Virus record (IMG/VR): IMGVR_UViG_3300046513_000348
Location: 62,001 to 126,000 of that record
Length of the DNA: 64,000 nucleotides
Direction: 5' to 3' (one strand)
Positions 5,434-15,308 of this stretch are shown here, piece after piece. The position numbers and the translations under genes are program-made. Each line of letters starts with the position of its first letter. The first letter of the stretch is position 1. The notes beneath the pieces are model-generated. The model did not search any database and was not told the DNA's origin. It worked only from the letters and a program-made list of their open reading frames with translations.

Positions 5434-6474
5434 TTACTCGTCGAAGACCAGGCCGTTGGCAGCGACCTTTTCTTTACCGGTGGTCAGCTTGTTGCGAACC
5501 ACGCGGCTGTCGGCTTTCAGTGCGAACTCGTCACGTTGCTTGCGCAGGTTGCGCATGACGATGTCGACAAAGCCGTCGGTGATGGCGTAGTGCAGCGGGA
5601 ACTTGAGGTCCTTCTGCTCTTCGTTGACGTACATCGGAACGCCGACACGCTGGAACTCGACCGGCTGCGAAACACGGGTGTTGTTCAGCGAGTCGTTCAG
5701 GGTTGCCAGCGAGATGATCGAACGGTCACCGATTTCCAGTTTGCCTTGCTGGATGTGCAGGACCGCGACTTGCGGACCGTACGAGGTGACGCCCTTGCGG
5801 GAGAAGTCCAGGACGTTGGCGATGTCACGCGAGTCCAGGTTCTTGTTCTGGCCGGACAGCAGGACTGCCAGGCACGAGATGTCCAGCTGGATCTTGCGGT
5901 CGACGTCTTCGATGGTGCCGTCCAGACCGTTCTGCAGGTAACGCAGGACAACCGGCCGCTCGCGCAGTTCGGCCATGCTGCCGTAGCCGGACAGGACGCT
6001 GATCGTGTTCTTGATGTAGTTCAGGGTGTCGTCGCCGCCGACGGTGAAGACGATGACGTTCTGGCCCATTGCCAGCAGTTCGGAAACGATCGACGGACCC
6101 ATGACGGAACCAGAGCCGCCGGTGGTCGAGTGGACGACGATGTTCCACTTCTTCGGTTTGAAGCGCTGCAGGATCTCGCGGGTGTACTCGATGATGGTCG
6201 AGCCGTGTTCCGAGCGGACGCCGCCGGAGCCGTCGGCGGTTTCGCCGGGTTCTTTTTCGAGGTGGTAGAAGTGCTGTTCCGGCACACCGAAGGTAGATGC
6301 TTTGGAGGTGTCCAGGTATACCGGGTGCAGGGAGGCGTAGCCGGGGATGCGTTTCGCGCGATCGGCTTCGAAGTATTTCGTGATACCGATGCCAGCGCCA
6401 CCGGTACCGTAAATAGCGATCTCATCGAATTCGACGGTATCGATGTCTTTTTCTTGGGCATTCAGTTGCGACAT
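5434..6474 (-). CDS. phuZ: Phage tubulin PhuZ (spindle protein)
   Basis: YGTGGAG nucleotide loop, YLDTS, tubulin signature HSTTGGSGS, LDSRDIAN T7-like loop, GLVFDE C-terminal tail; strong codon bias. Confidence 0.93.
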   Translation of the reverse strand: MSQLNAQEKDIDTVEFDEIAIYGTGGAGIGITKYFEADRAKRIPGYASLHPVYLDTSKASTFGVPEQHFYHLEKEPGETADGSGGVRSEHGSTIIEYTREILQRFKPKKWNIVVHSTTGGSGSVMGPSIVSELLAMGQNVIVFTVGGDDTLNYIKNTISVLSGYGSMAELRERPVVLRYLQNGLDGTIEDVDRKIQLDISCLAVLLSGQNKNLDSRDIANVLDFSRKGVTSYGPQVAVLHIQQGKLEIGDRSIISLATLNDSLNNTRVSQPVEFQRVGVPMYVNEEQKDLKFPLHYAITDGFVDIVMRNLRKQRDEFALKADSRVVRNKLTTGKEKVAANGLVFDE

Positions 6475-6533: not shown

Positions 6534-7175
6534 TCATGGTAATATATCTACGAAAAAATATCGAGTTCGATAACTTGAACCCGGATGCTTGCGGTCTCGG
6601 AATCGACTCCGCAGTGCTCCATAGGAAATCCCTAGAGCTTTGGCAGCATCGATCATTGACGGGTAGATAGTTCCGTCGATTGAGACTGGTATCTTCCTTG
6701 CTTCCCAGGCGGCTTTGATTTTGCCTGAGTCTGCAACTCGTTTACCGATCTTACTTTGCCTGAGCTTACTTTCTTCGCTGACTTGCCGTCCGTGCCCATT
6801 CACCTTTGCATTGGTGAAGACGTTAATCAGTTTGCCAGAATCCTTAAAGAGGTCGAGAAGTTTCTGCTCTTCCTTGTAAGCCTCTTCGCGGTCCTTCACT
6901 TTATAAAAGCTCACTCGCAAGTTTTTATTTTCGTGGCGGTCGTAAAGTTCTTGGAAAGTTTTGGTTGGGTATTTCCCGGCGATCAGTTTATTCCGATGCC
7001 AGGCAATTCGAACGTACAGATTGTTCGTGCTTCCCACATAAAGCATGTCGCTTGCTTCATGGTAGATGATGTACATAGCTGCAAAGCTATGTACCTTTCG
7101 TTGTAGTCGAGCGTGTCCTTTGCGGATCGCTTCTAGAGCAGTTTGCCAGTTGTCATAAGTCTGTTTCGTTTCCAT
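6534..7175 (-). mobile_element. Free-standing GIY-YIG homing endonuclease (Seg-like) with C-terminal NUMOD/HTH DNA-binding domain
   Basis: AMYIIY...LYVGSTNNLYVR.....H, E and N catalytic positions (EEQKLL, KLIN), C-terminal IDGTIYPSMIDAAKALGISYGALRSR; lower GC than neighbours. Confidence 0.85.
6539..6565 (-). promoter_or_regulatory. Putative early (vRNAP) promoter for phuZ
   Basis: Minus strand ...GATATATTAC, containing the phiKZ early consensus TATATTAC, about 65 nt upstream of the phuZ ATG. Confidence 0.6.
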
Positions 7176-8126: not shown

Positions 8127-8897
8127 TTATTGAAACTGACCTGGGTTGGCGTAAGGTGCCGGATAAACAGAGAAGTCTCCGTTGTATCGACCAACGCCTT
8201 TAGTTATGCGAACCTCATCAACGTAGCCGTTCATGATGTAATTCCACTGGGTATCAGTAAGAAGTCGACCCAAACGTAGGGGGCCGCCAGATGTAACTGT
8301 CTTTCCAGTCGAGAAGCTGTTCATCGTCAGAGGTAGGCTTTTGCCATTGACTAGCAAATAGAACGAGTTTCCGACTCGACTCACTGCGACGTGATACCAT
8401 TTGCCGATCTTAATTGACCCGGCAGCGGTTTTGAGGGTAAAAGCATTGGAACCATCTTGCCAGGCATTGTCGAAAACAAGAGTTCCATCATTCGAAACGA
8501 AAAGCGCCCATGCAGCAACGCCACCGGTGCTACCGCTGGTACCGCTTCCAGTAATGAAACAATTTTGCCCATATTGGGAATTTAGGGCTACGAAGTAAAC
8601 ATACGCCTCGATCGTGAAATCACCGGTACCAAAGCTATAGCCGGGTCGATTGATGCCATACGCATAACCGCCGCTTCCGTCGAAGTATGCACTGGTCGGA
8701 CCAAAACGTTTCTGAGCCGAACTCAACATCGCTGGACTAACGACGTTGAGCTGATAGGAATTTATGGTGTCGACGAATGCGGAAGATCCGCCGGCGGTAT
8801 CCATGTGCATCAACAAACTGACATTGCTGATGTATGGGTCAGCGATCGGCGGGTATTCAACGTTTCCGTTTCTCCGGCCCATTAAGATTTCATGCAT
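8127..8897 (-). CDS. LamG/concanavalin A-like lectin-fold protein (possible virion decoration or adhesin)
   Basis: VSLLMHMD, FGTGDFTIEAYVY, WYHVAVSR, YLLVNG, GYVDEVRITKG. Confidence 0.85.
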   Translation of the reverse strand: MHEILMGRRNGNVEYPPIADPYISNVSLLMHMDTAGGSSAFVDTINSYQLNVVSPAMLSSAQKRFGPTSAYFDGSGGYAYGINRPGYSFGTGDFTIEAYVYFVALNSQYGQNCFITGSGTSGSTGGVAAWALFVSNDGTLVFDNAWQDGSNAFTLKTAAGSIKIGKWYHVAVSRVGNSFYLLVNGKSLPLTMNSFSTGKTVTSGGPLRLGRLLTDTQWNYIMNGYVDEVRITKGVGRYNGDFSVYPAPYANPGQFQ

Positions 8898-9216: not shown

Positions 9217-9408
9217 TTACTTGACGATCTTACTGATGATCGTGGGCGTGTGTGCTGCAGTGCTGACGACGGCGTCAGCGAATGGCGCGAGCAGGAAGAC
9301 CGTGATTACGGCCATGCAGATCCAGTTCTGGCGACGTTCTTCTTTCGGATCGTTCTTCAGGAATGCTTTCTGGTTTTTGTCTTCGGCGTACCATGCGAAT
9401 TTGCTCAT
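9217..9408 (-). CDS. Small membrane protein
   Basis: 63 aa with hydrophobic WICMAVITVFLLAPFA; ATGA overlap with the upstream gene. Confidence 0.65.
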   Translation of the reverse strand: MSKFAWYAEDKNQKAFLKNDPKEERRQNWICMAVITVFLLAPFADAVVSTAAHTPTIISKIVK

Positions 9409-9593
9409 TTCTTTTTCCTCTTCTTAAATACCGTCTTCTTGACGGGTGTTTCAATTTTAGGCGGTGGTGTAATCCGACGGCGAATACCGTTCACGATTTC
9501 AAAGGCGACAAGGATAGTTCTCAGATTACCGTCCTTGTCGCGTTCCACCATTTTGGTGTGTACGACTTTATTGCTTGGCTTGCTTTTGTCCAT
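9405..9593 (-). CDS. Small basic hypothetical protein
   Basis: 62 aa, KKRKKK tail, overlaps both neighbours. Confidence 0.6.
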   Translation of the reverse strand: MDKSKPSNKVVHTKMVERDKDGNLRTILVAFEIVNGIRRRITPPPKIETPVKKTVFKKRKKK

Positions 9594-10215
9594 CCTCGTT
9601 ATCTTCGAAGTCGATGAGGAACGACTGGCCGTCGAGTACGACGCGAGTTATCGGAAAGCCAGGAAAGACTTCGGCCGATACGGAACAGTAGCCGGGGAAA
9701 TCTTTGATCATCTCGAACTCTCCTTTTGGTTTGAGCCAGAGGAGTCGAAAAAAAGTGTCACACTTCGTTCCCTGCCTCCCAGAGATCAGGAGCAGAGGAT
9801 TGCCTTGGAGCCGGCCCGACCATCGGATGCTCACTTCGTCGAAGGCTTCGTGCAGTTCTGCACTATGACCATCGTAGAGCGTGTACCATTTCTTCTGGTC
9901 GAGATCCTTGACGATCTTGACGCCCTCGGCCTGTGCTTTGACTTCCGGCGCTGCCTGAGCGGCGTTGGCAAAGGCCCACGCGAAGATGACGACGATCGCG
10001 ATGACCCAGTACTTCCATTCGTTACGAACGTAGCTGCAGGTAGCTGCCATGATTGCCTCCAATTTACTGCGTTTGGAAATCCGCCCGTTCTTGTCGAACA
10101 GGTGGTCATTGCGCCGCCGAGCATAGCCGATCTCAGCAAGAGCATTCCGGACGAGAATCTCTTTCTCTTCGACAGAAGAGATCTCGCGCATGTCTGCGTA
10201 AATGATGTTGTTCAT
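9568..10215 (-). CDS. Membrane-anchored protein with a probable periplasmic C-terminal domain
   Basis: Internal TM/signal segment WVIAIVVIFAWAFANAAQA, two C-terminal Cys; start set at 10215 from GGAG spacing. Confidence 0.7.
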   Translation of the reverse strand: MNNIIYADMREISSVEEKEILVRNALAEIGYARRRNDHLFDKNGRISKRSKLEAIMAATCSYVRNEWKYWVIAIVVIFAWAFANAAQAAPEVKAQAEGVKIVKDLDQKKWYTLYDGHSAELHEAFDEVSIRWSGRLQGNPLLLISGRQGTKCDTFFRLLWLKPKGEFEMIKDFPGYCSVSAEVFPGFPITRVVLDGQSFLIDFEDNEDGQKQAKQ

Positions 10216-10263
10216 GTTAAACTCCATTGTAAAAAGTTTGCACTGTTCAGAGCATCTCGCTCT

Positions 10264-10914
10264 TTATTCCCAGTTGATTCGGGCGTCAAGCATAGCCATT
10301 ACGGCTGGCGCCATTTCCTTCGGGAGCCTTTCGGTCATCTCGGTCGCACGGTCCTTGATGTATTCGAGCGTCTCGACGCGTTCTTCGTTCGATCCCAGAA
10401 CGGCCGCTGCGAAATTGTCGGCTTCGACTTCGCGATCGTTGTAGCCTTTGGTGCCGAACGGCGGCGCGTCCACCATGGCGCAGTGATCCAGTTCATGATG
10501 GCCGAGTTCGTGAGCGAGGATAAAGGCCAGGCGTTTCGAATGCTTTTCTTGGAAGAGCTTCGAGGTCACCACGATGGCTTTCACCGTTTTCTCTTCGTCG
10601 AACGTATGGTCGAGCATGAAGAGATGGATCTTCGAACCGGAGTTTTCGTACGACACGACGAGTTCATCGCGACGATACACAATCGCTGCGCCTCCTCCGC
10701 ATGCGTCAATTATGTCGGCAAGTACTTGTACGCCAGGATCTTTGTCCGCCTGATCGATCTTGATGAAGAAGTAACTACCACTCAGCGCGATCGAGTTGGT
10801 ATTCAAGTCGGCAATGATCGAGTTGATTTTATCTTTATTCCAGAATGCATTCATGTTATTCTCCGTAAATTTTGGCAGGTCAAAAAGACCTATTTTAAAA
10901 GGTCGGATAATCAT
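10264..10914 (-). CDS. Zinc metallopeptidase-like protein (HExxH, M48/ImmA-like)
   Basis: FILAHELGHHELDH and REVEADNFAA. Confidence 0.8.
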   Translation of the reverse strand: MIIRPFKIGLFDLPKFTENNMNAFWNKDKINSIIADLNTNSIALSGSYFFIKIDQADKDPGVQVLADIIDACGGGAAIVYRRDELVVSYENSGSKIHLFMLDHTFDEEKTVKAIVVTSKLFQEKHSKRLAFILAHELGHHELDHCAMVDAPPFGTKGYNDREVEADNFAAAVLGSNEERVETLEYIKDRATEMTERLPKEMAPAVMAMLDARINWE

Positions 10915-10934
10915 TACTGACTATCTTCACGGGA

Positions 10935-11014: not shown

Positions 11015-12334
11015 TTATTCAGGCAATGGCATGCGGGAGATGTGACGAGAATGTACGTCGGCCAGGAAAGCGATCGGATTATCCGGGTTTTCCTTGAATG
11101 CGTTTTCCACCTCGCAGCCAGGCAGGCGGATTGTATTCTTCGACAGCAAAGACATGCAGCGAATATGATGCTCTTCGGAAATGTTGTCATACATCTGTTC
11201 GATGTATTCGAAGATTTCCACCGAGGTCAATTCGTCGATGAGGTATTCGTTGTCGATACGCGACTTGCGACGAACGGCGGGATCCAGATCTTCAGGATGA
11301 TTGGTAGTCATGATGATGATCAAGTTGTCCAGACCAACCACGCCGTCGAACGCATTCAGCAAGCCCGACATGGTAAGACCGCCGCCAGTCAAAGCTTCTG
11401 CCGCAATGGATGCCGCATCTTTCTCTTTGTCTTGCTTACGTTTACGAACTGCGCTGCCTGCCTGGTCCACATCTTCCAGCAAGAGGAACGAACCTGGGCG
11501 AATGTTTGCCAGAGCAGCCATCAGCGTTTCGTTGGTCATGGCGGACAGATCCATGACGTAGATGTCCCGGCGGAAATGCATTGCCAGCAAACGCGACAGC
11601 GTAGTCTTGCCAGTACCAGGCGGCCCGTAGAAAAGGAAAGAAGATTTGTAGGTCAAACCTTTGCGACGGTACCAGTCACGATTCTCGATGAAGTGCTGGA
11701 TCTTCCCAATGATGTCGTTCTTCTGCTCACGGTTCATGCAGAACGTCGAAATGTCCCGCGGAGCTACCTGGCAGATTTCCTTCCAGCCATCGCGACCACC
11801 CACACCGTGCACACTGATCGTGTCAGTCTTGGCCTTCTTCGAATTGAACAGGTTAGTCAGGCGTTCGAATACCGTGTTGTTCAAACCGAAGGTACGAATC
11901 GTGATCTCTTCCTTCTCACGTTCAGCGCCAGACGAATCGAGCTTGCGTTTCGTGAACCAGAACAGACGACGTTCGTAGAAGAAGAAGTGATAGCCGAAAC
12001 CAATGCCCAGGCGATAAGGCGAATAGTTCTCTTCAGCAAACAGATCTTCGCGCCATTGACGGAACATAAAGAAGTTGCGACTGAACCGTTTGTAGCCCGA
12101 CTGCATGAACCACTTGTCGAACAAAGTGTATGCATCGATGTTACCATCGTAACCTGCATTGTTCAGGCTCATCGTCACGGTCGTGAAGCGAATGAACGCA
12201 TCCCAGATACGAGATGGCAGATTCTTCAGATAGAACATCAAACCACCGATCAGTGGGATTGCGATCGTTGCGACCAGTGGGTTAGCTCTGGTGATTTCGT
12301 TGTAGTGGCTGATGATCGAAGTGATCCAGTCCAT
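11015..12334 (-). CDS. Bcs1-like membrane-anchored AAA+ ATPase
   Basis: N-terminal TM segment, BCS1_N-like GFGYHFFFY...EEITIRTFG, WYRRKGLTYK, Walker A GPPGTGKT, Walker B LLLEDVD, LTMSGLLNAFDGV, MTTNHPEDLDPA..R..RID. Confidence 0.88.
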   Translation of the reverse strand: MDWITSIISHYNEITRANPLVATIAIPLIGGLMFYLKNLPSRIWDAFIRFTTVTMSLNNAGYDGNIDAYTLFDKWFMQSGYKRFSRNFFMFRQWREDLFAEENYSPYRLGIGFGYHFFFYERRLFWFTKRKLDSSGAEREKEEITIRTFGLNNTVFERLTNLFNSKKAKTDTISVHGVGGRDGWKEICQVAPRDISTFCMNREQKNDIIGKIQHFIENRDWYRRKGLTYKSSFLFYGPPGTGKTTLSRLLAMHFRRDIYVMDLSAMTNETLMAALANIRPGSFLLLEDVDQAGSAVRKRKQDKEKDAASIAAEALTGGGLTMSGLLNAFDGVVGLDNLIIIMTTNHPEDLDPAVRRKSRIDNEYLIDELTSVEIFEYIEQMYDNISEEHHIRCMSLLSKNTIRLPGCEVENAFKENPDNPIAFLADVHSRHISRMPLPE

Positions 12335-12391
12335 TTGAAACTCCTAAAGGGTTGACTAGATTAGAAATCTGACAAACAGAAAAATACCTAA

Positions 12392-12415
12392 CCATCCTGC
12401 CGTGAGGCAGGATGG
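12392..12415 (-). terminator. Hairpin, family 2
   Basis: ccatcctgcc-gtga-ggcaggatgg. Confidence 0.7.
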
Positions 12416-12419
12416 AGGA

Positions 12420-13010
12420 TCAACGGAGTTTCGATAGATCAAGGTAAAACGACATTGCACGGTAGGGTTTCGGGAAGTACAACTTCGCCTTACCCAGATA
12501 GTGGCCAGGACTATCGTTGCCAATCAGACGGGAGAATACGGCGACCTCGATGATTGCCGAAGTGTCGTTCAGTTCAGCACGGCTGATCGTTCCCTTGAAA
12601 ACGTAGAGATGTAACCGCTCTGCGACTTTCGAAGCATTGAGGTTTCCAACATCTTCCTTAGCCAGGTTTTCGTAATTGATGCAGTCCAGTGCCATCGGCG
12701 CATGCCAGCCCGGAGTCGTCTTGGCGAAGTAAAACACGATCTCGCGATCTTCCGCCAGGGAAAAACTCATGCCAGGGACCCATCTTTTCGGCTCATGACC
12801 CACGATGTTCGTCAGACGTCCTAACGGGGGATTGTACAGGTCGTATTCGTTTACAGGCGCTACAAGCTCTTTTTGTTGTTCTGAGCTGCGCTGTTGTGTC
12901 CGAGGTGTCCGGAGCGCTGCCACGAGGCTCTGAGGACTTGCCAGGGGCATTCCTGCCTCCTCATCACGCTCCCCGCTCGCTGCGCGCTTGCGATCTACGA
13001 AAGTTTTCAT
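12420..13010 (-). CDS. Hypothetical protein
   Basis: 196 aa, GGAG Shine-Dalgarno. Confidence 0.7.
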   Translation of the reverse strand: MKTFVDRKRAASGERDEEAGMPLASPQSLVAALRTPRTQQRSSEQQKELVAPVNEYDLYNPPLGRLTNIVGHEPKRWVPGMSFSLAEDREIVFYFAKTTPGWHAPMALDCINYENLAKEDVGNLNASKVAERLHLYVFKGTISRAELNDTSAIIEVAVFSRLIGNDSPGHYLGKAKLYFPKPYRAMSFYLDLSKLR

Positions 13011-13022
13011 TTTTTTACTCCA

Positions 13023-13324
13023 TGACTTTTATTCAAAAGATCAAAAGTCAAATAGGATAAAACACCAAGACCACCTTTCGGCGGCCTTGGGTTTCGGGAT
13101 TGGGGATTATCAAGCATGTTGTATCCCTCTGTACGAGAGGGATACTAACTTCTTTTTTACACAAAGCGAGTAGCTTTGTCATTTCTTTGTTTTTGAAAAA
13201 AAGACTTCTTTCTTATTAATATAAATACGTTAGTATTTATATTCATTATAATACTAAGAATAATAAAGTCTCGCACTATATCAAAGTAGGCAATAATAAA
13301 TAACATAAACACCGTAGACGGTGT
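13023..13324. other. AT-rich divergent intergenic region with at least six inverted repeats
   Basis: Stems at 13023-50, 13060-94, 13121-45, 13161-79, 13202-71 (apical 13218-43) and 13309-24. Confidence 0.7.
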
Positions 13325-13406
13325 CGAGTTTCTTTCGCGGTAAAATTTTCGGAAAACGCAGATCTTCTGACCTTGAATCCACCATACTTTTCGAGAGGAC
13401 ATACAG

Positions 13407-14054
13407 ATGGGTTTGGTAGCCACCATGCGCGACGTGCAAACCAGCACGAAGCCCGAAGAACTGAATCGATACAATCCGGAACGGCCGATCATGGTCGATG
13501 GCAGTCTGAGCGAACTCGTGACTCACGCTCTGAACATCGCCTATTCCAAACGCAGCATGACTACGGGTGATCCGTTTTACGGCAATCCCAATCCGACTGG
13601 CAATCCTGCGCCAGGTGCTGGCTTCGTGCCGAACATTCAAGCACCGGATGCGAACCGTACCGAAAAGGTCGTTCGTCCGACGCTCGAAGGCATGCAGATG
13701 CACCAGGAAGAAGCCGAGCACGTTGCCGCTGCTCTGTCCACGGTGCTGAACGCCAAGGACAAAGATGCGACTTCGTATCTGGCCCAGGAACCACTGGTCG
13801 TGTACGCCCTGCCAGCCGACGGCATGGTGAGCGAAGAAATGAATGCCGACATCGACATGTATGCTGAAAGCGGCGCGGTCGACATCGGTGATTTCGTCTT
13901 CGTCTTCTCCGACAACAACGATCCGACGATCGCTCAAGACTATCGTCCGGTCGACCTGAACCAGCGCGTCAAGGATTACGAAGGCAAAGGAGCCCGGGTC
14001 TACAAAGACCTGCAGTCGTTCCTGATTGCGCTGCCAGATTTGCGTCGTAAGTAA
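13407..14054 (+). CDS. Conserved phiKZ-like protein, probable head protein
   Basis: 215 aa, DGSLSELVTHALNIAYSK motif, possible protease site TLE/G; GAGGA Shine-Dalgarno. Confidence 0.7.
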   Translation: MGLVATMRDVQTSTKPEELNRYNPERPIMVDGSLSELVTHALNIAYSKRSMTTGDPFYGNPNPTGNPAPGAGFVPNIQAPDANRTEKVVRPTLEGMQMHQEEAEHVAAALSTVLNAKDKDATSYLAQEPLVVYALPADGMVSEEMNADIDMYAESGAVDIGDFVFVFSDNNDPTIAQDYRPVDLNQRVKDYEGKGARVYKDLQSFLIALPDLRRK

Positions 14055-14060
14055 TCCGCC

Positions 14061-15308
14061 ATGCCTGGTCAGATTAAAGCTGTGATGGATCAGGAGTTCA
14101 GTCATCTTCCGATCGACAAGAAACTCTTGGATCGCATCCTGAAATACGAACGCGATTTCATTAACAAAAACGAAGACCACATCACCTTCTTCGGTGGCCA
14201 CCTGATGGGTGTGCAAGTGGTTCGCTTCGATCCGCGTGATCGTGCTTACTGGTTCGACGACGTTCTCGAGATCAACGAGTCCTCGCTCCAGGAAGTTCTG
14301 TACGCACTGAAAAGCGAAGAACACAAAAACGAACCACTGATCGACCCAGAGTTCAATGTCCGCAGTGACGTGATGAACATCACTTGTGGCTACCTGGTCC
14401 ATCGGTTCATGAACGCAACTCACCTCCCACTCGACAAACGGGAACAAGGTGCAGAAGCAGTCATCCGCATTATGCTCTACAAGTTCCTGACCTCGCTGCT
14501 CTGGAACTACTTCAAATACCCGGCCAATCCACAAGTGGCAGAAGCGACCTACAATGCTCTGTCGCTGAAGTTCGGCCTGAAGAAAAACGGCAATTGGAAG
14601 AAGTATCTGGACGAGCGTGCTCACCTGACATTGGCCAAGGGTTCGATTCACCACAAGACCCTGGTCGACATGCGTGATGATGAAGCTTTCCTGTACTTCA
14701 TCGGCGATACCCAAGGTCGTGTGCGCGGTACGGTGAAATCCATCTACGCAATCTTCGACCGCATGAACAAAGCAGGCGTTCGCATCATTTCTTCGTCTTC
14801 AGTGATGGAGTACGATGGCGAATTGATTCTGAAGGACAAGTCTCGAACTTACCAGGCCGAGATCCGTTACATTGCCGACATCATCGGTGACCGTGGTTCC
14901 TTCGTCAAACCTGAACTCCTGCGCATCATCGAGAAATCGGTTCCGACAGCCAATCCGACGATGCTGATCAAAACGCTGAACTGGATGTCCGACAATGCTG
15001 GTTACGGCAAAGACGATATCGTTAATCAACTGACGATGAAAACAGTCATCTATTCTTTCAACTACCTGACCCGCAATCCAGGTCTCGTTAAAGGTCGCCG
15101 TGACATCTCTGGTGTTCTGGTGAGTCTGCGTGGCTCCTTCACTGCTTCCCGTGCTTCGGATGAAGATCTGATGGAACTTCGCGAGATGGCTGAGAAAGTG
15201 GCAGGCTTCGCAACGGGATCCAAAAATGAAACGGTTCTGAAAGCAATTCGTACGGCAGTGCTGTTGTACATCATCGGCCGCATCATGTCGAAAGACTACT
15301 ACAGCTGA
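14061..15308 (+). CDS. Conserved phiKZ-like protein, probable virion structural protein
   Basis: 415 aa, KNEDHITFFGGHLMGV; located next to the terminase block. Confidence 0.7.
   Translation: MPGQIKAVMDQEFSHLPIDKKLLDRILKYERDFINKNEDHITFFGGHLMGVQVVRFDPRDRAYWFDDVLEINESSLQEVLYALKSEEHKNEPLIDPEFNVRSDVMNITCGYLVHRFMNATHLPLDKREQGAEAVIRIMLYKFLTSLLWNYFKYPANPQVAEATYNALSLKFGLKKNGNWKKYLDERAHLTLAKGSIHHKTLVDMRDDEAFLYFIGDTQGRVRGTVKSIYAIFDRMNKAGVRIISSSSVMEYDGELILKDKSRTYQAEIRYIADIIGDRGSFVKPELLRIIEKSVPTANPTMLIKTLNWMSDNAGYGKDDIVNQLTMKTVIYSFNYLTRNPGLVKGRRDISGVLVSLRGSFTASRASDEDLMELREMAEKVAGFATGSKNETVLKAIRTAVLLYIIGRIMSKDYYS

Follow-up and report, generated by a model that had tools for sequence, protein, structure and literature searches.

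To our knowledge, mitochondrial Bcs1 (BCS1L) is the only AAA ATPase that carries a folded protein, the Rieske protein, across a membrane. In bacteria folded proteins are exported by the Tat system, and this export depends on the proton-motive force. It is also Tat that bacteria use for the Rieske step (PMC8662606). Orthologues of Bcs1 were described in all three groups of jumbo phages by Iyer, Anantharaman, Krishnan, Burroughs, and Aravind, who proposed for them a membrane-proximal role in assembly (Viruses 2021; PMC7824862). This article deals with one such gene, found on the minus strand of a 64,000-nucleotide stretch of DNA (hereafter the window) that corresponds to bases 62001-126000 of the 218,660-bp IMG/VR record IMGVR_UViG_3300046513_000348, a phage genome judged 97% complete by CheckV and holding a single copy of the gene. 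We assign its product with high confidence to the Bcs1 family as a true member. The full proposal, to which we give a probability of roughly 0.4, is that this phage-branch member forms a cytoplasm-facing, membrane-anchored ring which would move folded clients at the expense of ATP.

The gene is an open reading frame (ORF) with an ATG start, spanning exactly positions 11015-12334 and encoding 439 amino acids. Its product matches the Pfam BCS1_N profile (PF08740) at 44.7 bits, against a gathering cut-off of 28.1, over profile positions 1-181 of 182 and residues 29-197, this domain lying directly N-terminal to the AAA domain (64.4 bits, residues 234-366). A sequence-only reading of the window, made before these searches, had already called the gene a full-length Bcs1-like AAA translocase with a BCS1_N-like middle domain. 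The motifs it quoted are all present (DWYRRKGLTYKSSFLFYGPPGTGKT, LLLEDVD, TMSGLLNAFDG, and MTTNHPEDLDPA), BCS1_N and AAA both score above their cut-offs, and the assignment is borne out by sequence, profile, and fold alike. The chain also matches PHROG 7485 (“unknown function”) from end to end (E 4.9e-148), a score that as a measure of sequence similarity is far beyond chance, and the best match found by phmmer among PDB sequences is Bcs1 itself (6sh3, E 8.5e-29).

An AlphaFold2 model built from a 28-sequence alignment, with a mean predicted local distance difference test score of 84, shows a long helix at residues 19-51, a beta-rich portion at residues 52-190, the AAA core, and a lid of four helices. 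When it was compared to the PDB using Foldseek, subunits of the Bcs1 heptamer ranked first (top match 8tp1_A, E 6.4e-29, 445 columns, template modelling scores of 0.69/0.72), followed by the soluble YjoB of Bacillus subtilis (E ~3e-16) and then by ATPases of the p97/Cdc48/FtsH type. The same ranking was obtained by phmmer on PDB sequences. Across the 28 aligned sequences there is no variation in Walker A (G237-K243), Walker B (E287/D288), the sensor-1 residue N345, or arginines R356 and R359, and with Walker A, Walker B, sensor 1, and the arginine fingers all in place, the AAA core reads as catalytically intact.

Three hallmarks of Bcs1 were then compared in 111 proteins of the family, of phage, metagenomic, bacterial, and fungal origin. 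An inverted “ED” Walker B and a spacing of 42-52 residues between Walker A and Walker B are present in all 111, and none of those checked (0/111) has the aromatic-hydrophobic-glycine motif of pore loop 1. The outgroup, an unrelated AAA protein, has instead a “DE” Walker B and a longer spacing. The window's protein displays all three hallmarks, with a spacing of 45 residues, which argues against a threading unfoldase of the FtsH or Clp kind. The likeness to the mitochondrial Bcs1 structures (6sh3, 6uko, 8tp1, 9gs2) covers these hallmarks as well as the predicted topology and the order of the domains: a short N-terminus, one membrane helix, the middle domain, AAA, and a helical lid. The differences are an identity of only ~20-25%, the placement of the window's protein, by a quick tree, in a distinct group of phage type, a Pfam Bcs1 lid model that goes undetected, and a phage that encodes no Rieske client.

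The N-terminal transmembrane segment noticed in the sequence-only reading is predicted at residues 18-36, the sole strongly hydrophobic stretch of the N-terminal part (19-residue Kyte-Doolittle mean of 1.67), inside the long helix of the AlphaFold2 model. A layout in which such a segment precedes, by at most 15 residues, a basic cluster with a net charge of +1 to +4 is kept in 13/13 phage homologues, including those of phiKZ and PhiPA3, and in ~25 of 28 wider homologues. On the N-terminal side of the segment the 13 phage proteins are neutral or slightly acidic, except for that of phage Noxifer (+1). With the basic cluster lying C-terminal to the segment, the positive-inside rule predicts that the N-terminus is out, the C-terminus in, and the ATPase cytoplasmic. 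Such a topology, with a periplasmic N-terminus and with the middle and ATPase domains in the cytoplasm, would match that of mitochondrial Bcs1, and the predicted N-out orientation is the one needed by a Bcs1-like exporter.

The same segment could also belong to a soluble or peripheral chaperone or disaggregase similar to YjoB, in which the hydrophobic stretch would mediate oligomerisation or peripheral attachment instead of spanning the membrane. YjoB is indeed the next-best fold match after Bcs1, the segment is barely above the usual hydrophobicity threshold and rich in glycine and proline, and the phiKZ orthologue was recovered in cleared lysates. Those lysates, however, contained Triton or preserved membrane complexes, and the segment with its basic cluster is kept across very divergent homologues. 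YjoB is a prokaryotic AAA chaperone, and the fold match covers the whole chain over ~430 aligned columns, but it is soluble, has no anchor, and matches far more weakly (E 3e-16 vs 6e-29, with 17% identity); in sequence as in fold, the window's protein is clearly nearer to Bcs1. A soluble chaperone is quite unlikely on this evidence.

The phage carrying the gene is a phiKZ-like jumbo phage, because it encodes a PhuZ tubulin and shares both sequence similarity and local gene order with RSL2 and RSF1. Its nearest cultured relatives are the Ralstonia and Burkholderia jumbo phages RSF1, RSL2, FLC, and SURPRISE13 (57-61% protein identity); the only sequencing run containing it is a rhizosphere DNA metagenome, which is probably the sample it came from, and no RNA run contains it. 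Using tblastn, homologues of the Bcs1-like gene were found in 163 of 50,697 phage records, and all those listed are at least 142 kb long. Among those listed are phages of Pseudomonas (phiKZ-like), Erwinia, Serratia, Klebsiella, Salmonella, Xanthomonas, Caulobacter, and Brevundimonas, as well as the 142-kb Pectobacterium phage phiTE. The window's protein is 57-61% identical to those of RSF1, RSL2, and the FLC phages, 33-36% identical to those of the phiKZ group, and 85% identical to its best public relative, which is metagenomic. In the ESM Atlas, several clusters combining BCS1_N and AAA are dominated by Uroviricota, and related giant-virus clusters exist as well. A scan of IMG/VR with the full alignment, which was keyed on a generic Walker A, returned mostly unrelated AAA proteins, with full-length relatives only at three of our numbered loci (L006-L008). 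The window's protein is a new sequence in a known phage gene family without characterised function.

Compared to the orthologues of phiKZ (gp286, whose KTN4 counterpart is KTN4_344), PhiPA3 (gp347), RSF1 (ORF017), and CcrColossus (gp235), it has the same end-to-end match to PHROG 7485 and the same anchor layout. It differs from them by a neighbouring zinc protease found only in its own sublineage, and from the phiKZ and PhiPA3 versions by an insertion in the latter: the phiKZ-group proteins (PhiPA3 gp347, L003:3845-5419; phiKZ-type gp286, L165:3387-4913) are 508-524 residues long and align in two pieces, which implies an insertion relative to the 439-residue form. The naming of these genes is uneven. 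GenBank calls that of CcrColossus “AAA+ ATPase and BCS1 domain protein,” and other records label homologues FtsH, “cell division protein,” or “chaperone”; the labels FtsH and “cell division protein” are misannotations. FtsH is likewise a membrane-anchored AAA protein of the classical clade, but it has an M41 protease domain, two membrane helices, and an aromatic pore loop, whereas the window's protein has no M41 domain and a single helix. The FtsH label was rejected for the window's gene (NCBIfam FtsH 38.5 bits vs a cut-off of 600, no M41 match, one hydrophobic segment), as was that of IetA/IteA, since the best PADLOC IetA matches reach 49 bits over a P-loop stretch of 80-110 residues and NCBIfam IteA gives 39 vs 510. 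No subtilase of the IetS type was found next to the gene by Pfam or PHROG.

The family had been held to be mostly eukaryotic; it is indeed universal in eukaryotes, but sporadic members are also found in bacteria, phages, and giant viruses. When 185,579 species genomes were scanned for the Bcs1-type motifs with a pattern built on an 8-sequence subset (the N-domain and post-Walker A sub-alignments being too variable for a pattern), at least 359 bacterial or archaeal stretches were seen to encode relatives. Most of the 80 loci kept encode a complete N-domain and AAA domain, usually with an N-terminal hydrophobic segment. The Mameliella and Singulisphaera proteins match Pfam BCS1_N (54 and 120 bits), AAA, and AAA_lid_BCS1, and with the latter protein as query, 3,339 of the 8,000 candidates scored reach E ≤ 1e-10. 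Prevalence is low: 8/301 genomes for the family of a Rhodobacteraceae match, 2/301 for Planctomycetota, and 0/14 for model prokaryotes. A profile of the BCS1 N-domain only retrieved 7,754 representatives of 50%-identity clusters (3,829 at E ≤ 1e-10), and in nearly all of the best 150 this domain begins at residue 35-50 of a 400-470-residue protein, which fits a short anchor. The bacterial Bcs1-like ATPases (Isosphaeraceae/Singulisphaera, Rhodobacteraceae, Zoogloea, and others) resemble the window's protein in their BCS1_N and AAA domains, N-terminal hydrophobic segment, and hallmarks; they differ by forming a separate group in the tree, by a recognisable AAA_lid_BCS1, by their sporadic occurrence, and by one sublineage being part of an RtcB-PrfH operon. 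In four betaproteobacterial metagenome-assembled genomes (L116, L117, L119, L136), the Bcs1-like gene adjoins and is convergent with a gene for Peptidase_U32, a family that includes RNA-hydroxylation factors; this is possibly another translation-related neighbour, or a coincidence.

The tree in question is a quick maximum-likelihood tree of 112 sequences, in which eukaryotes are represented by fungi only and whose rooting, on one long outgroup, is weak. Eukaryotic and viral homologues had been named in the sequence-only reading as the comparison to make, and the window's protein does not group with the fungal Bcs1-like proteins. It falls within a phage-type group supported by a Shimodaira-Hasegawa-like approximate likelihood ratio test (SH-aLRT) value of 88 and made of 41 rows: 13 phage proteins, 20 metagenomic relatives, and 8 contigs from metagenome-assembled genomes. 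There it belongs to a fully supported nine-member subclade with RSF1. The fungal Bcs1-like clade has an SH-aLRT value of 100, and the bacterial group one of 89.

The behaviour of the protein during infection can be followed in phiKZ. PhiKZ286 was detected in pooled samples taken at 10, 20, and 30 min, and in Grad-seq it is among the ATPases of the high-molecular-weight fractions, and not among the proteins clustering with the 30S and 50S subunits (Gerovac et al., 2024; PMC10914614). Fossati et al. observed co-elution of PHIKZ286 with the 70S ribosome, likewise of PHIKZ285, encoded next to it, and found that PHIKZ286 was crosslinked to rplL, rplK, and rplJ (PMC10449902). Membrane complexes were retained both in the lysates of Gerovac et al. 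and in those used for size-exclusion chromatography and mass spectrometry. The size behaviour of gp286 fits a membrane-anchored ring, and part of its co-elution with 70S may be due to size.

The mechanism that we favour would run as follows. During the first half of infection, copies of the protein would form a ring, which in Bcs1 is seven-fold, at the cytoplasmic surface of the host's inner membrane, as suggested by analogy with the solved Bcs1 structures and by the high-molecular-weight behaviour of gp286. Because the loop of threading unfoldases is lacking, clients would most likely be gripped in a folded or partly folded state, inside the cavity that the middle and AAA domains enclose. An ATP-driven conformational change would then insert the client into the inner membrane, move it across, or release it from the membrane. 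The result would be an ATP-powered route for folded proteins, independent of the proton-motive force and of host Tat. The phage client must be different from Rieske, since the host already exports the latter by Tat. Among possible settings, the sequence-only reading had suggested the early infection vesicle. A role specific to the vesicle or to the phage nucleus is unlikely as a general function, because CcrColossus and phiTE, which are not phiKZ-like, carry the gene too.

Several observations weigh against this mechanism. There is no conserved client, partner, or membrane-related neighbour, and translocation is proposed by analogy only; the phage genome encodes no Rieske domain. The anchor segment is only moderately hydrophobic (with the glycines and prolines already mentioned), and a soluble relative exists in YjoB. 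Pfam AAA_lid_BCS1 (PF25426), which does score in bacterial relatives, is not detected in the window's protein at E values up to 1; the lid region is nonetheless modelled as four helices at residues 371-434, and the phmmer alignment to Bcs1 reaches residue 420. The grouping apart from fungal Bcs1-like proteins means that the function may have diverged. Finally, the crosslinks of gp286 to ribosomal stalk proteins point to a different kind of client.

These crosslinks, together with a gene linkage seen in bacteria, motivate a ribosome-centred explanation: the ring would dock at the L7/L12 stalk in order to tether, remodel, recycle, or protect ribosomes, during takeover or under ribotoxin attack, with no transport across the membrane. 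The linkage is as follows. At 7 of the 80 bacterial loci, mostly from Rhodobacteraceae and one from a metagenome-assembled genome labelled as of the Rhizobiaceae group, the Bcs1-like gene comes third in an operon, after those for RtcB and an RF-1-domain (PrfH-like) protein. All three genes were called at L130, L140, L149, L156, and L157, and only RtcB upstream at L124 and L137. Overlapping starts and stops were confirmed at L130 (3400-6540) and L140 (3456-6504). The arrangement is also found in three of the eight Bcs1-like matches from the even sample of 301 genomes, one of them being the L130 genome again, and L167 and L170 likewise carry a Bcs1-like gene as third gene of an RtcB-PrfH operon. 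RtcB2-PrfH is a ribosome rescue and repair module acting against colicin-E3-type rRNases (PMC9304027, PMC9223846). The literature on this module, as far as it is searchable, describes a two-gene operon and mentions no ATPase.

For the phage protein, the 70S co-elution and the crosslinks to rplL, rplK, and rplJ speak for the ribosome, as does the overlapping third gene of the Rhodobacteraceae operon. Against this, L7/L12 is abundant and readily crosslinked, the co-elution may reflect size alone, membrane complexes having been preserved, and Grad-seq places PhiKZ286 outside the 30S/50S cluster. In the tree, moreover, the genes linked to RtcB-PrfH form one sublineage of the bacterial branch and are not part of the phage branch, and the phage genome has no gene for RtcB or RF-1. 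A ribosome-directed role for the phage protein is in our view unlikely. A wider version seems rather doubtful: prokaryotic and phage Bcs1-like rings would be ribosome-associated machines, not exporters. Seated on the inner membrane, the phage ring would bind host ribosomes at the L7/L12 stalk, where it could tether or remodel them during takeover or counter ribotoxin-type defences. The Rhodobacteraceae copy would be a hitherto overlooked third component of RtcB2-PrfH, and mitochondrial Bcs1 would have specialised later, from an ancestral activity of another kind.

The genomic neighbourhood bears on the role in assembly put forward by Iyer et al., according to which the protein would be a membrane-proximal chaperone of virion assembly, binding and translocating folded proteins destined for the head. 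The published argument comes from the phyletic spread over all three groups of jumbo phages (PMC7824862). In the window, the terminase and a virion structural protein are encoded 4-6 kb from the gene, and in phiKZ-type phages some neighbours are annotated as virion-associated. The immediate neighbours across ten phages are however mostly non-structural, namely small hypothetical proteins and products of nucleotide or DNA metabolism genes: primase/helicase, MazG, thymidylate synthase (ThyA), an NAD-dependent ligase, and the phosphoribosyl pyrophosphate (PRPP) and NAMPT enzymes of NAD salvage. In addition, the phiKZ protein is already made by 10-30 min. In nucleus-forming phages, capsids are assembled at the membrane and filled at the nucleus, and a step of translocation from membrane to head is not obvious. 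This assembly role therefore appears improbable, without being far-fetched.

The neighbourhoods of 13 loci were also compared by blastp at 1e-3 in search of a conserved partner, which was rejected: the Bcs1-like gene is the only one in common, and no neighbour is shared beyond close relatives. Only phiKZ and PhiPA3 have a gp285-like gene upstream, and the small ORFs found downstream have no common length, hydrophobicity, or sequence pattern. In the window, the terminator-like hairpin that follows the stop codon (Table 1) suggests that the Bcs1-like gene terminates its own transcript, and in phiTE, CcrColossus, and LucasX, terminators are annotated immediately upstream of the homologue. The gene appears to be monocistronic, stand-alone, and non-structural. 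The stem-loop upstream of the gene is absent from the list given by the consensus terminator scan because its T-tract is interrupted.

In the window's own sublineage the surroundings are less variable. A same-strand trio, made of a protein of ~200 residues without known function, the Bcs1-like ATPase, and an HExxH protease of ~205-216 residues, is kept in the window and at L174 and L175, with flanking proteins ~30% identical. The protease probably starts at M21 (position 10854). Its residues H135, E136, H139, E162, and D166 are invariant across three homologues (28-31% identity), and it shows a weak fold match to BepA, with weak Peptidase_U49/Lit-like and M78 signals. The two proteins might then constitute a two-part machine similar to FtsH, with the ATPase feeding or activating the M48-like protease for the cleavage of membrane proteins, for example those of host defence or of the envelope. 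The preserved order of the trio despite the low identity of the protease, as well as its invariant catalytic residues, would agree with this. But RSF1 lacks the protease, and so do the phage collection as a whole (hence RSL2 too) and all the other phage neighbourhoods; a word-based search with it matched only itself. A terminator-like hairpin stands between the two genes, and the ATPase lacks a threading pore loop. We consider such a pair most improbable. An operon joining AAA and protease was rejected as a general feature for the same absence and the same hairpin, and the protease is treated as a lineage-specific neighbour limited to the window's sublineage.

As for the upstream member of the trio, the 196-residue protein has no Pfam or PHROG match. 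Over its first ~20 residues (MKxFVDRKRAASGERDE) it hardly differs from a homologue with which it shares just 33% identity as a whole. This suggests that the N-terminal stretch may have a function, as a tag or as a binding peptide. The motif was rejected as a common signal, since it occurs only once in the phage genome.

The sequence-only reading had also considered superinfection exclusion and the removal of membrane-bound defence effectors. As an extractor of membrane proteins, a counter-defence protein, or an exclusion factor, the phage ATPase would remove host effectors from the membrane or block superinfecting phages. Early expression, predicted membrane anchoring, and the sporadic, accessory-like distribution in bacteria give this a general plausibility. 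The matches to PADLOC and NCBIfam defence models are weak, though, there is no defence-island context, and the threading loop suited to extraction is absent, all of which makes this role very unlikely.

Table 1. Features of the window discussed in the text, with positions counted from its first nucleotide.
Feature	Position	Strand	Basis
Bcs1-family AAA ATPase gene	11015..12334	-	ORF; Pfam BCS1_N and AAA; PHROG 7485; PDB sequence and fold matches to Bcs1
Predicted single transmembrane anchor, residues 18-36 (NPLVATIAIPLIGGLMFYL), then basic cluster K38, R43, R49	12227..12283	-	Kyte-Doolittle; homologue comparison
Bcs1-specific middle (BCS1_N) domain, residues 29-197, beta-rich	11744..12250	-	Pfam PF08740; AlphaFold2 strands 52-190; Foldseek alignment to Bcs1
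AAA core and helical lid, residues 234-434	11033..11635	-	Alignment; hallmark check; AlphaFold2 lid helices 371-434
Shine-Dalgarno AGGAG, 6 nt 5′ of the ATG	12341..12345	-	Direct sequence reading
Intrinsic-terminator-like hairpin, 10 pairs, TTTTAT tail, 6 nt 3′ of the stop codon	10984..11009	-	Consensus scan and sequence
Stem-loop of 10 bp (CCATCCTGCC-TCAC-GGCAGGATGG) and T-rich tail, in the gap separating the Bcs1-like gene from its upstream neighbour	12392..12415	-	Direct sequence reading
Upstream 196-residue protein	12420..13010	-	Homologue (33% identity, E 6e-38) in the corresponding upstream position at L175
Downstream HExxH zinc metalloprotease, M48-like	10264..10914	-	Pfam M48, 25.3 bits vs cut-off 20.3
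PhuZ tubulin	5434-6474	-	phrog_4733, E 5e-84
Terminase large subunit, 727 residues	16364-18547	-	PHROG

A few other features of the window deserve mention. The PhuZ gene is adjoined by a gene for a homing endonuclease of the GIY-YIG/I-TevI type, at 6534-7175 on the minus strand. The terminase matches PHROG models in two stretches, the best-aligned one covering only residues 1-222, and the rest of the protein may be divergent or bear an insertion. A 256-residue protein encoded at 8127-8897 (minus strand) contains a concanavalin-A-like/Laminin_G_3 domain and matches parts of large virion and baseplate proteins in PHROGs. Very long shadow ORFs lie antisense to real genes at 9250-10920 (plus strand, 556 residues), 11042-12355 (plus strand, 437 residues), and 13281-14714 (minus strand, 477 residues), and these could mislead a reading based on ORFs. 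The second of them was rejected as a gene, being the shadow of the Bcs1-like gene.

For the window alone, the outcome is that a member of a phage gene family already known, though not characterised, is correctly annotated; its presence here will not surprise a specialist. Many jumbo phages keep the family, among them phiKZ and PhiPA3, both studied in depth, and the protein is made in infected cells, where it is found in large complexes. The origin of mitochondrial Bcs1 is a question on which the scattered members in bacteria bear, as does the separation of phage, bacterial, and fungal proteins in the quick, moderately supported tree. If it is true that phage Bcs1-like rings move folded proteins across or into the bacterial inner membrane, they would provide a second, ATP-driven route for folded proteins in bacteria, and would offer a compact system in which to study the mechanism of Bcs1.

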